Part shown: in pieces, positions 50,006 to 56,202 of the stretch
Numbering within the stretch: the stretch's first letter is position 1
Layout: each line of letters opens with the position of its first letter
Source: Orbicella franksi
Lineage: Eukaryota
Length of the DNA: 64,000 bases
Direction of reading: 5' to 3'
Assembly (NCBI GenBank): GCA_964199315.1
Contig: OZ116703.1
Location: 7,750,001 to 7,814,000 of the forward strand
Notes under the pieces: model-generated
The model's input: only the letters and a program-made list of their open reading frames with translations
The model's database searches: none
What the model was told of the DNA's origin: nothing
Translations under genes and position numbers: made by a program

Positions 50006-53000
50006 ATGGAACTATGGCGAACAATGGTCGCTGCTTTTTTTGCAACGCTCTTGTTTTCATTTGTTGAAACAAAGAAAAGAAAGAAAGCCAGGCACCAAGT
50101 TCAGGTAGAAACGCTACAGAAACTGTGCCGTGGGTCCTTACCTCCAAGCACCAAAAAGAACATCTTGGAGCTTCAAGCGTTTTTCGACCTCAGCAAGGTA
50201 CTAAACTTCCAATAGACAGTAAAGACTTAGAGTGTTAGCACAGAACACAACCGACTTGAATCACGCCGTAAATCAATGGTTTTATGAAAGATACGATGTT
50301 AAACAAATACATATTTTCCTTTGTTGCAGGCATTTGCATGTCTGAAAGTCGAAACTTGCTCGCGTGTTCCGGTATGTTTTGTTGAGGATACGCCCGGCCT
50401 CGGACACGAAAGTCTGAGCGATTGCACACTGTGGAATCTGCTCCTTCTAGGACTCCAGGTAAAACGTGACTTAACGAGGAAAAAAGGCACTGTTTTTTTC
50501 TTTGCCTGGCTTGTGCCCCGGCCTAAAAAGGTGTATGCAAAAAATTAGTTTAGACCGTCACCGAAATTGGACAGGAATCAAATCAAGGTTGATCGTGCCA
50601 CGAGTCATGTATAGTAGTAAAGATTGCCTCGGTTTGCTTACGTTGAGTGTAATTCGCTTTCAATCTGAAGTGCGAATCTAACCATGATTTGTTTTCAGTT
50701 AAATGACCTCTTGTTTTCTCCTCTCGTCTGAAGTAGTAGGCAATGTTAGTCGAAATGGTTCATTACTACTTCGAGCAAGCTTAAGCGTGAGTCACCACAA
50801 ATCCGGTTATTAAGATTATTCGGGAAACGACACAAAGTCATAAAAACTCTAATGCTCTGACCCTTTGGAAGATACATTCTGGAACGTGTTCGAGGTTGTA
50901 AGCGTTGACCACACACTCTTAGTACATGCTGAATTAGAAAATGTACAAACTAAAACCGCACTTGATACCAGTTGATTTGGCCGAAACGTTTTAAAACAAG
51001 AAGACATAAATGTGATACTACCTGCTAATTTTTACAAACCCCTGGGGGTAAACTTTCCGATTTCTTCACTGCGGACAGAAAACTAGTAAGACTATTTCAA
51101 ATGACTACACCTAATTTGAATAAAATGCCAAGGCCTATTTTATTTTTTCTTCTGACGATTAAGCAGACATTAGAGCGACTCAAGAACGAAATTCTCATCA
51201 AATTTCCATTTTGAAGAATTTGAGAATTCCTTTGTCCTTGACACGTTGACCTGCAAAAGCTGTTCAGCATTCCTCTTCTTGGCTAATTGGCATCCAAATT
51301 TAGTTCAATAATGGAGAAGTGCTTCAGTTCTTCAAACCTGTTGAGCAAAGTACTTCAAGTGATCAAAGTGATTTTTCGTCAACTGAGAGCGCCCGCCTGA
51401 GAACTTAATCAACTCGTGCCGTGCGTTGACAGATCGATAAATAGCTGTCTTGATGAACTCTTGTCGAGTACAATGTCTTCTCTAATTGCGTCATTTAGAA
51501 GTCTCTGCTTCTAATTGAATCCACCGCTGTTGTATTGGTTTTTCCTGAAACGATGTTTCTTGGAAGTCGACTCGGGTCTGACCTTGTGCAGAGAAGATTA
51601 TCATTTGACCAGCGAGTTTCTGTTTGTTCGAAGTTTGTTTTATCTGTGAATTGGTTAATGACAGCTGTTAAGTCCGTCACAATGTCTTTAGTTTACAGTA
51701 TCAAGTTAGCCATCTAAGATCATGACAGCAACAAGGATATGTTAGTTGGATTAGATAAAAGCTAGAGAGAAAAAAAAAAACTACACGAAAAAAAAAATCC
51801 CTTCGATGAACCGATTTTACATTCAGTAAAAAAGAATCAATAATAACGCTTGGAATGGATCCACTAAAGTAAAATATGTCTTATCAAAGATTATTAATTC
51901 AATAGCTATCATACTTGAAAGATGGCCGGCTTAATGTATCATTTTTATGACAGTAATACCGTTGCAAGACCCTTTCCTTTGACATCCAGCGGTTTTGCTT
52001 TTCACATGAATAACCCAGATCTTGTTCTGTTAACGATTTTCCTGTTTTGCCTCTCTGAGTTTCGGCTCCAAACTGCTTTCCACTGTGTTAAGGCCACGTC
52101 CACTCTGCGCCAGCTCTATTTCTACGGCTATGCCTTTTAACCGTCCACACTAACCCGTCACGAAAACCGAGCTTTCCGAAACCGGAGAAATTTGAGAACG
52201 CCGGCTTTGCCTTTTAGTGTAGACGGAAAACATTCTGAAAGCGGAGCTTTTGGAAAACGATGGAGTTTTCTTGAAACGCAAATTCAAAATGACTGATGAT
52301 TGTTGCGTTTTCAAATTTCTCTGGAGTAGTTTGGACGGAAAAAAAATTGATACGTTTGCAGAGTGAAAACGCTGTTTTCAAATCAAATTAATCTAATTTA
52401 AGGCGGTAATCTTAAACAAACCCGGGACCTTTAACTTTTAAAACTTACTTGGGGTAATTCGCCTAGACACAGAACCACAATTTGACAGTTCCCTCTGTTT
52501 CGTTTGAGTTAAACGAGCTCTTTGATATGATTAATTGACAGAAGCTAGAGGCTGTAATCTCCGCACAAAGGCTTTATCTGTTAAGCGACTTTCCACATAC
52601 AAACAGAGGGGTTCTCCACGAAGAAACGAGACTTTAAACGAATTAAAGAATTCCTCGGAGGGGTCGTAATTAATCAAGATAATTAATGGCCGTAATAAGA
52701 TTTATTGCTAATACCTTTTAATCTAACATGACCTTTTTTTACACAGTCAGTAAAGCCCACAATTGCACAAGCTGCTTCGGCGCGAAATATCTTTACCTTA
52801 ACGGGTCCTTCACTTACCCAGTGTGAGACATTCCTACAGTAAAGTTAATGCTAAGAACGTTTGAGTTTCAACATTTCCGGTCATTAGTATGCCTCTTTCA
52901 TGAAACTCAAAAGAAGTGCTCTGTTATCATACCACGAATACTTAAAGAAATACCAAAACGTTTTTCTCGTTTCACTGTTGTTTTTTCTTACGTAATCGTT

Positions 53001-56000: not shown

Positions 56001-56202
56001 GCATAGCACGAACAGCAATTCTACTTGTGAAGAGCTCAGAGGGTGCCAACGTATTTGCGTAGGGCAAAACGAGCAGTTGACAAATGTGTCCGATTGCCGT
56101 ACGTTCAAGATCCACTGTACATCAAGAAAGCTCTTCAGAAGGTCGGCAAAGAGTAAAACTCAAAAGACGAAGAATAAAAAGCATAAACCCAGATCAAACT
56201 AG
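50006..56202 (+). CDS. Uncharacterised secreted, Cys-containing basic protein, 257 aa, 4 exons
   Basis: Exons 50006-50197, 50330-50458, 55372-55507, 55886-56202; phases 0/0/1, canonical GT-AG with pyrimidine tracts, 774 nt in frame. Hydrophobic N-terminus MELWRTMVAAFFATLLFSFVET; 11 Cys; 5 N-glycosylation sequons; Lys/Arg-rich ends. Confidence 0.8.
52090..52385. mobile_element. MITE, GGCCxCGTCCACAC family (PIF/Harbinger-like)
   Basis: AAGGCCACGTCCAC start with internal GGACGGAAAACA and GAAAACG motifs; related to 56684-56968. Confidence 0.6.
53161..53187 (+). repeat. (CAA)n microsatellite
   Basis: CAACAACAACAACAACAACAACAA. Confidence 0.85.
53613..53795 (+). repeat. Two-copy ~90-bp tandem duplication
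   Basis: ATAATAAAGTG.ATTAATTAC..CTCAATAACTTC...ATACGACT.AGAAGTTAACTTCATTGTGATTGGC.GAGAGAAGGCA occurs twice. Confidence 0.8.

Follow-up and report, generated by a model that had tools for sequence, protein, structure and literature searches.

What kind of protein is encoded between positions 50006 and 56202 of a 64,000-nucleotide (nt) stretch of the Orbicella franksi genome (GenBank assembly GCA_964199315.1, contig OZ116703.1, positions 7,750,001 to 7,814,000 of the forward strand; hereafter the window)? A preliminary description, made from the sequence alone, had proposed an orphan secreted precursor that releases a cationic, cysteine-rich peptide. The best explanation of our results, held with slightly better than even confidence, is that the locus encodes a 270-amino-acid (aa) BRICHOS-type prepro-protein belonging to a divergent anthozoan subfamily that sequence models leave unannotated, and that its C-terminal part is released by a convertase. 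Gene structure, transcription, conservation, a BRICHOS-like predicted fold and purifying selection are resolved in this analysis and are presented first, followed by the processing and function proposed for the product.

The earlier gene model spliced four exons in phase, with a 4.9-kb second intron, into a 257-aa protein. Its start codon (ATG at 50006), stop codon (56200-56202), in-phase splicing and GT-AG borders on all four exons were found as quoted; however, it missed a 39-nt microexon within the supposed 4.9-kb intron. RNA contigs assembled from two runs, X10 (polyA) and X14, join five exons at 50197/50330, 50458/54508, 54546/55372 and 55507/55886. Of the three junctions expected from the four-exon model, the first and last were recovered, but 50458/55372 was absent from all RNA contigs of X10 and X14. 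The microexon is in phase 0 (cag/AAA...GTG/gtaagt) and encodes KNRRIEPVVENPV; the same 13 residues sit between LLGLQ and SARYHG in LOC110042850 of O. faveolata (P0001, 270 aa), the nearest database protein. Because the RNA contigs include the microexon, the product is 270 aa and not 257 aa in length. The corrected five-exon product differs from O. faveolata LOC110042850 by K29R alone. The exons are as follows.

50006..50197, plus strand: coding part of exon 1, from the sequence and RNA joint 50197/50330, starting with the ATG at 50006; besides the signal peptide it encodes the polybasic N-terminus KKRKK, Cys41 and the first BRICHOS-like strand, ending at Asp61, and has a phase-0 donor after D-L-S-K
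50006-50071, plus strand: predicted signal peptide, residues 1-22, within exon 1
50330..50458, plus strand: exon 2, from RNA joints, ending L-G-L-Q in phase 0; encodes strands 2-3 with Cys68, Cys74 and Cys80 (the BRICHOS Cys1 equivalent), plus Cys96 and helix alpha1
54508..54546, plus strand: microexon 3, 39 nt, KNRRIEPVVENPV, from RNA joints 50458/54508 and 54546/55372 and conservation; encodes a beta-strand of the domain (model strand E111-114), with R110, I112, E113, P114 and V115 (R-x-I-E-P-V) invariant in corals
55372..55507, plus strand: exon 4, from sequence, RNA joints and conservation; encodes helix alpha2, which carries Cys142 (equivalent to BRICHOS Cys2, motif AVSNLCHGANVYRF), then the last strand and the first part of the Ser/Thr linker, predicted to be N-glycosylated
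55886..56202, plus strand: exon 5, from RNA joint 55507/55886 (depth 8267 in X10); encodes the remaining linker, the basic site, the cationic C-terminal domain, the polybasic tail and the stop codon at 56200-56202

A minor RNA contig joins 55507 to 55887 (depth 7.6 against 8267); its acceptor is off by one base, leaving an extra T, and it is probably an assembly or sequencing variant.

The gene is transcribed and spliced. In X10, the contig with the first three joints had a depth of ~2,000 and the contig with the last joint ~8,300, compared to ~56 for intron contigs; in X14, the corresponding depths were 46-69, 284 and ~9. The depth of junction-spanning contigs exceeded that of intron contigs 5- to 36-fold at the first three joints and ~30- to 150-fold at the last joint. 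The transcript is apparently abundant, with contig depth being a poor measure of expression according to the tool's own warning; as assembled contigs, the RNA data reveal junctions and not strand, ends or rare isoforms. Raw reads from two polyA runs of 2026 carrying the same species label, X23 and X24, gave 0 and 1 reads, respectively, on 50080-56079 in a 12% sample, unlike the older metatranscriptomes, which cover the exons deeply. Since X23 and X24 were all but empty in this sample, expression may depend on the sample or condition (stage, tissue), or the two runs may represent a differing sample type. The retention of CpG dinucleotides reported for the locus was borne out by observed/expected ratios of 1.05 for the locus and 0.92 for the coding sequence, compared to 0.27-0.6 in the gene bodies upstream. 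In corals, a high CpG ratio goes with weakly methylated, inducible or tissue-specific genes. The O. franksi genome (497 Mb) holds one copy of the gene, and an Rfam search of 49500-57500 yielded no match. Pattern searches located two further elements flanking the coding exons.

49876..49881, plus strand: candidate TATA box, TATAAA, ~130 nt upstream of the ATG, with a putative promoter role
56516..56521, plus strand: ATTAAA, the sole polyadenylation-type hexamer within 1 kb past the stop codon

Two repeats were observed in intron 2. An 85-nt dispersed repeat has a copy at 52179-52263 and another downstream of the gene at 56749-56833, the two being 85% identical; a spike in RNA-contig depth at 52080-52480 (6964 in X10, 1350 in X14) and several loose contig ends coincide with this repeat, which is more likely an interspersed element, transcribed and with its depth added up over many genomic copies, than a part of the gene. 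A pair of 58-nt direct repeats (53652-53709 and 53738-53795), 93% identical and 86 nt apart, also showed raised depth (309 in X10).

The description of the gene as an orphan did not survive database searches. Word-indexed and exhaustive profile searches matched 38 representative clusters, many of them fragments, and besides O. faveolata, orthologues were found in the stony corals Pocillopora, Porites, Desmophyllum and Oculina and in the sea anemones Nematostella (LOC116619670), Actinia (LOC116301847) and Actinostola. Among full-length members, P0050 lies farthest away (E 9e-4 to the family profile); it derives from metatranscriptome run SRR10174410 of the octocoral Callogorgia delta, so that Callogorgia probably has an orthologue. 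The family is therefore Hexacorallia-wide at least and probably Anthozoa-wide. The LOC and accession identifiers of the orthologues have no mention in the searchable literature or in the supplements of PMC12960093. One database protein from a related coral, P0010 (255 aa), is a mis-called gene model, an intron-retaining read-through of the intron-4 region; in Orbicella, intron 4 (55508-55885) is rich in irregular GTGAC/CGTGA-type motifs.

Conservation is concentrated in two parts of the protein. Residues 50-151 have an identity of 0.71 between corals and 0.38 between corals and anemones, and the Cys core (residues 210-250) has 0.68 and 0.32, respectively; the values for the Ser/Thr linker, the basic-site-plus-helix segment and the tail are 0.29-0.41 and 0.13-0.23, with the amphipathic-helix region at 0.41 and 0.13. 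The ratio of nonsynonymous to synonymous substitution (dN/dS) between Orbicella and P0002, the nearest relative (dS 0.25), was 0.08 for residues 50-151, 0.78 for the linker, 0.38 for the helix and 0.24 for the Cys core (range 0.12-0.35). The Cys core and the BRICHOS-like part are under purifying selection. All 11 cysteines are kept in corals (11/11), and anemones lose C96 and gain three for a total of 13, so that the odd cysteine count noted earlier for Orbicella holds in both groups.

We examined the fold of the N-terminal domain with AlphaFold2 (AF2). With the family alignment, AF2 produced an alpha/beta domain, with a predicted local distance difference test (pLDDT) score of 57 for the whole protein and 70-83 for residues 50-115 and 135-150; modelled alone, the N-terminal domain had a pLDDT of 74.6 and a predicted template modelling (pTM) score of 0.69. 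The structures were all predicted from shallow alignments. Six strands together with two main helices were seen in both AF2 models, and no cytokine was matched in any fold library, contrary to the suggestion that the N-terminal half recalls a helical cytokine; a four-helix-bundle cytokine was rejected as a candidate.

The fold libraries consistently pointed to BRICHOS. A Foldseek search of the N-terminal domain against the PDB placed 2yad and 8ovi at ranks 2 and 7-10. The best match in an ESM Atlas shape search was an ITM2 cluster (95% BRICHOS) with a template modelling (TM) score of 0.53, compared to 0.38 for the runner-up, and among AlphaFold Database (AFDB) clusters, ITM2 and BRICHOS-domain proteins were matched at a probability of 0.80-0.85. 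In the Swiss-Prot set of AFDB, BRICD5 was at rank 1 and chondromodulin/tenomodulin made up 7 of the top 30. Language-model neighbours of the whole protein in ESM Atlas carry BRICHOS or OAF domains (scores ≤0.84, treated as a lead). Each fold score is modest alone, and the argument for a BRICHOS-like fold lies in the agreement among the libraries. Searches beyond the isolated domain contributed little: Foldseek of the whole model against the PDB was uninformative, and searching PDB sequences with profiles of the family and of the C-domain returned one chance match, phage Bet (E 0.49).

The canonical BRICHOS residues can be placed on the models. D61, present in at least 90% of members, ends AF2 strand E53-61. 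C80, which lies in strand E78-84, and C142, which closes helix 135-141, are invariant and line up in hhalign with Cys1 and Cys2; by analogy, they would form the canonical BRICHOS disulfide. The alignment with 2yad runs end to end from 54-150 of the model to 98-197 of the chain and, if ungapped at its ends, would put D61 on D105 and C142 on C189 of proSP-C, a placement read from the end points and not from the residue-level alignment. When the family was compared with proSP-C, ITM2B and CNMD by hhalign, the Cys2 segment (helix alpha2, Cys and last strand, AVSNLCHGANVYRF) was the best local match each time, with P of 0.048, 0.015 and 0.046, respectively, and a probability of 1-3%; the proSP-C query sequence was checked to be identical to 8ox2_A/2yad_A. 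A relaxed hhalign run stretched to 95 columns and kept Cys1, helix alpha1 and Cys2 in register. Another hhalign run, against the coral C9 BRICHOS domain alone, put C68 and not C80 on Cys1 (P 0.004); we consider this register mistaken, since D61/C80 is favoured both by the AF2 strands and by the intron positions. Two other attempts were discarded. A global hhalign with a column-shuffle control was unusable owing to an end-overlap artefact (z 0.08), and stanniocalcin, considered for a FAC-L-x-x-x-T-C likeness, was dropped as no stanniocalcin appeared in any sequence or fold search.

The intron positions provide further support. In the present gene, one phase-0 intron follows D-L-S-K (50197) and another follows L-G-L-Q at the end of helix alpha1 (50458). 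A bona fide BRICHOS gene of the same genome (L010, in the C9 array), whose spliced domain scores 34.5 bits on Pfam BRICHOS (E 2.5e-8), has phase-0 introns right after D-F-E-K and after L-L-D-Q, also at the end of helix alpha1. L019, a gene located on another chromosome (with an exon-level Pfam match of 17.4 bits only), has a corresponding exon that opens with the same N-L-T-M and stops where helix alpha1 stops. Both intron positions, and their phases, agree with those of coral BRICHOS genes; this is supporting and not defining evidence. Five features are listed for BRICHOS members in PMC9714404: an anchor or signal peptide, a site for convertases, a mature peptide whose nested cysteines lie in a hairpin, a disulfide joining helix alpha2 to a strand, and a conserved Asp where a strand ends. 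All five features can be located in the present sequence or its models (D61, C80, C142, the polybasic site and the signal-peptide-like N-terminus), and together with the shared intron positions they support common descent with BRICHOS.

The sequence-profile results weigh against this assignment. Pfam PF04089 (cut-off 25 bits) had no match in 10 members at E≤10 and none at the present locus in a six-frame genome search, Pfam searches of the 257-aa and 270-aa proteins gave no match, and the hhalign comparisons with proSP-C, ITM2B, CNMD and a merged set, all of which picked the Cys2 motif, reached P of 0.012-0.048 with probabilities of 1-5% (1-9% across all hhalign runs) from shallow alignments (effective sequence number ~2.5). 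These results, along with three extra cysteines (C41, C68 and C74) and a hairpin longer than in canonical BRICHOS, would suit an unrelated alpha/beta fold specific to anthozoans, in which case the protein would be a novel secreted factor and the resemblance convergent. We consider this improbable, given that BRICHOS was at or near the top in five independent libraries with two models, that the Asp, Cys1 and Cys2 occupy equivalent secondary-structure positions, that two intron positions and phases are common to bona fide coral BRICHOS genes, and that the overall architecture fits BRICHOS. Overall, the N-terminal domain is probably a BRICHOS domain.

Turning to the ends of the protein and its C-terminal part, the cysteine counts, the N-x-S/T sequons, KKRKKARH, HKKR/QGG and LF/RR all read as described in the preliminary account. 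A hydrophobic segment at residues 7-20 is followed by a V-E-[TSA] cleavage motif. The alignments uphold the proposal of a secreted precursor with a conserved polybasic site ahead of a cationic, Cys-rich C-terminal part, the elements of which are listed below.

55939..55950, plus strand: candidate proprotein-convertase site H-K-K-R, codons 184-187, from alignments
55960..56001, plus strand: cationic amphipathic helix, residues 191-204, from the AF2 helix (pLDDT ~71) and hydrophobic moment
56017..56139, plus strand: conserved Cys core, residues 210-250, from alignments, an AF2 hairpin at low pLDDT and dN/dS
56140..56199, plus strand: Lys/Arg-rich tail, residues 251-270, from alignments, with composition kept and sequence not

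A polybasic site is present in every member: HKKR in Orbicella, RKRR, RRRR, RLRR or RQRR in other corals, and RIKR or GKR in anemones. The 83-aa C-terminal part that follows has an isoelectric point (pI) of 10.7, 21 Lys and Arg residues against 4 Asp and Glu residues, and 5 Cys. It comprises, in order, the coral-specific helix, a conserved N-x-S/T sequon before C213, C-x-R-I-C-V-G-Q, a loop with a second sequon, C-x-T-F-K-I-x-C-T and the Lys/Arg tail. The core thus has the pattern C-x(4-8)-C-x-R-I-C-V-G-Q ... C-x-T-F-K-I-x-C-T with two conserved sequons; C213, C219, R221, I222, C223, C236 and C243 are invariant. AF2 strands E221-225 and E237-240 carry C219/C223 and C236/C243, which fits a hairpin braced by C223-C236 and C219-C243. 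Two anemone-only cysteines, which occur together in three anemone sequences, flank the hairpin ladder and would fit a third, outer rung. From the pattern of cysteine gain and loss, C213 may be linked to C96 in corals or to a linker Cys in anemones. The C-domain profile found no relative among PDB sequences and no usable Atlas match.

The preliminary description had the C-terminal part processed like that of a neuropeptide or toxin, an orphan precursor with a cytokine-like helical N-terminal half giving a 62-aa peptide that begins with pyroglutamate and is cut at KKR/Q and LF/RR. Both dibasic motifs are present in Orbicella, Gln follows the first, and the segment SLNKFIKQLRKLNK in the helix at ~190-204 is indeed amphipathic, with a hydrophobic moment (muH) of 0.72 reached by 0.6% of shuffles. 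However, members carry Q, R or P directly after the basic site; Gln188 gives way to R or P in other corals, anemones lack the motif, and the GG that follows is coral-specific, so that pyroglutamate is not supported as a feature of the family. Neither is the second cut: past the Cys core, F249 and R250 alone are conserved, and the second R of the RR site is variable. The helix is present in several other corals but absent in anemones, and is not supported as the functional core. Moreover, the gene has orthologues, the exon model was wrong, and the N-terminal domain has six strands and is not a helical bundle. The sequence offers a single candidate product, and the repeated peptide copies and Gly-Lys/Arg amidation signals of cnidarian neuropeptide precursors are absent from it. 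A neuropeptide- or toxin-type precursor is consequently very improbable. The general idea of a released peptide fares better, as the BRICHOS-proprotein architecture and the polybasic site partly support it.

We weighed convertase release against the possibility that the protein is an uncleaved, secreted BRICHOS-like glycoprotein, acting like the gastrokines as an intact basic extracellular protein with polybasic stretches that serve as glycosaminoglycan- or mucus-binding patches and an odd cysteine that yields covalent dimers. Several observations favour this alternative or otherwise count against a released product. The HKKR of Orbicella is a weak furin motif lacking Arg at P4, and Oculina has Pro at P1', both unfavourable for furin. 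Net charge is +20 to +49 in all members, and basic clusters occur at three places and not at the proposed cut site alone. The putative C213 link to C96 or to a linker Cys would tether the two parts in any case. The C-terminal domain was modelled at a low pLDDT of 48-59. The N-terminal part, or pro-region, is basic (pI 9.45), unlike the acidic pro-regions of worm BRICHOS antimicrobials, and the candidate product is long, predicted to be N-glycosylated, single-copy and under purifying selection, which is atypical of antimicrobial peptides. Against the uncleaved form, most members have a textbook R-x-[KR]-R (RKRR, RRRR, RLRR, RQRR or RIKR) at exactly the cut position, and most BRICHOS families as a rule liberate their C-terminal part by proteolysis (PMC9714404; PMC6265681). 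We therefore regard an uncleaved glycoprotein as fairly unlikely.

In the preferred reading of a cleaved BRICHOS prepro-protein, signal-peptide cleavage, convertase cleavage, a chaperone role, disulfide pairing and product activity are proposed by analogy, the steps following the established behaviour of BRICHOS proproteins (PMC9714404; PMC6265681). A cleavable signal peptide would be cut after V-E-[TSA], directing the protein to the secretory pathway and exposing the polybasic N-terminus. Residues ~50-151 would fold as a BRICHOS-like alpha/beta domain with the canonical D61 and the C80-C142 pair, and this domain might chaperone or shield the hairpin-forming C-terminal region in transit, as in other BRICHOS proproteins. 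A complex of the two domains predicted with ESMFold2, run without alignments, had a pLDDT of 31-36 and speaks neither for nor against binding. The Ser/Thr linker is likely to be heavily N- and O-glycosylated. A furin-type proprotein convertase would then cut at the conserved polybasic site (HKKR in Orbicella), releasing a polypeptide of ~83 aa (pI 10.7, net charge +17, glycosylated) with a beta-hairpin core braced by disulfides, a polybasic tail and, in corals, a cationic helix ahead of the core. Once free, this polypeptide might act extracellularly on polyanionic targets.

For the function of the product, we tentatively rank first, at somewhat less than an even chance, a host-defence or microbe-controlling role in mucus or epithelium because of the charge, the amphipathic helix and hairpin, the high expression, the inducible-type promoter context and the BRICHOS antimicrobial precedent. 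A matrix-bound signalling role, or one bound to glycosaminoglycan or heparan sulfate, is ranked second, as possible and on the whole unlikely, because the gene is single-copy with 1:1 orthologues under purifying selection and has conserved N-glycosylation and a polybasic tail. A further and fairly unlikely version is that of an unrecognised Anthozoa-wide BRICHOS subfamily whose conserved, glycosylated C-terminal domain, of a heparin-binding type, would be not an antimicrobial peptide but an endogenous signalling or matrix factor functionally like chondromodulin/tenomodulin, perhaps remaining disulfide-tethered to the pro-domain after cleavage.

The precedent for host defence comes from the polychaete BRICHOS antimicrobial precursors arenicin, alvinellacin, nicomicin and capitellacin (PMC6265681, PMC10745061), which have a signal peptide, a BRICHOS domain, a dibasic or convertase site and a cationic, disulfide-braced C-terminal peptide, all predicted for the Orbicella protein. 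The polychaete pro-regions are acidic and their peptides are 20-40 aa and unglycosylated; in contrast, the Orbicella protein is basic throughout, carries a mucin-like linker before the cut site and would yield a product of ~83 aa. An acidic pro-region of the arenicin type, which neutralises a short cationic peptide, was not found in the N-terminal part, and the C-terminal part has two conserved sequons.

The membrane-anchored BRICHOS proteins share other features with the present protein. ITM2B/Bri2 (and also ITM2A/C) gave the best ESM Atlas match and likewise has BRICHOS, a furin site and a short Cys-containing C-terminal peptide in that order, along with a similar Cys2 motif (LC-x-x-x-x-x-Y-[RK]-[LF]). 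However, Bri2 is a type II membrane protein with a long cytosolic/transmembrane N-terminus that releases 23 aa, and it is matched by Pfam BRICHOS, unlike the Orbicella family (hhalign probability 3%). CNMD and TNMD likewise have BRICHOS, a convertase site of the RxxR type and a glycosylated segment, and they release a Cys-rich C-terminal domain as an extracellular factor. They differ by their type II anchor, compared to the 14-residue N-terminal hydrophobic segment and signal-peptidase-like motif seen here, by a glycosylated segment that lies after and not before the cut site, and by a hydrophobic C-terminal domain with 8 Cys. When the family was compared with CNMD by hhalign, the alignment covered the BRICHOS Cys2 motif and nothing in the C-terminal domain; homology with the chondromodulin C-terminal domain, considered for a C-Q-[KR]-I-C likeness, was dropped.

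OAF offers a precedent for a BRICHOS protein missed by Pfam: it is a secreted member that was recognised through AlphaFold models and five shared features (PMC9714404). HHpred is significant for OAF but not for the Orbicella family, and the two have no detectable sequence kinship. The coral C9 BRICHOS genes share the genome, the precursor logic and the two phase-0 intron positions with the present gene. They differ in matching Pfam BRICHOS and in forming a homogenised tandem array of at least 10 near-identical genes (G000:C9:14,419,000-14,643,000; L009-L018 and L020, with L009 carrying an in-frame stop in its last domain exon), whereas the present gene is single-copy and divergent with a C-terminal core conserved between corals and anemones. 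Judged from the models, the family is probably a divergent, unannotated BRICHOS subfamily.

Elsewhere in the window, the minus strand carries an intron-less 527-aa open reading frame at 41697-43280, whose N-terminus has a zinc-ribbon-like motif (C-x2-C ... C-x2-C) and whose C-terminal half is acidic and rich in Ser; judged by eye, it resembles a TFIIB/BRF-type factor.

Corals have hundreds of BRICHOS genes, some of which are among the most strongly heat-induced transcripts (PMC5299404) and some of which, including the Pocillopora BRICHOS peptides, have been predicted to be precursors of antimicrobials (PMC12960093). Surveys of this kind use sequence models that overlook the present family, yet the gene is strongly transcribed in Orbicella, itself a threatened reef builder of the Caribbean. 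Its 39-nt microexon, which encodes an invariant strand, is easily missed by reading the sequence alone. The single copy and the conservation from corals to anemones make the Nematostella orthologue LOC116619670 tractable as a model for knock-out. If released, the C-terminal domain would be a new type of BRICHOS client, a long glycosylated domain joining a cationic helix and a hairpin, and a candidate host-defence or signalling molecule. If the version with an endogenous factor like chondromodulin/tenomodulin is true, BRICHOS-derived tissue regulators would be placed at the base of animal evolution.

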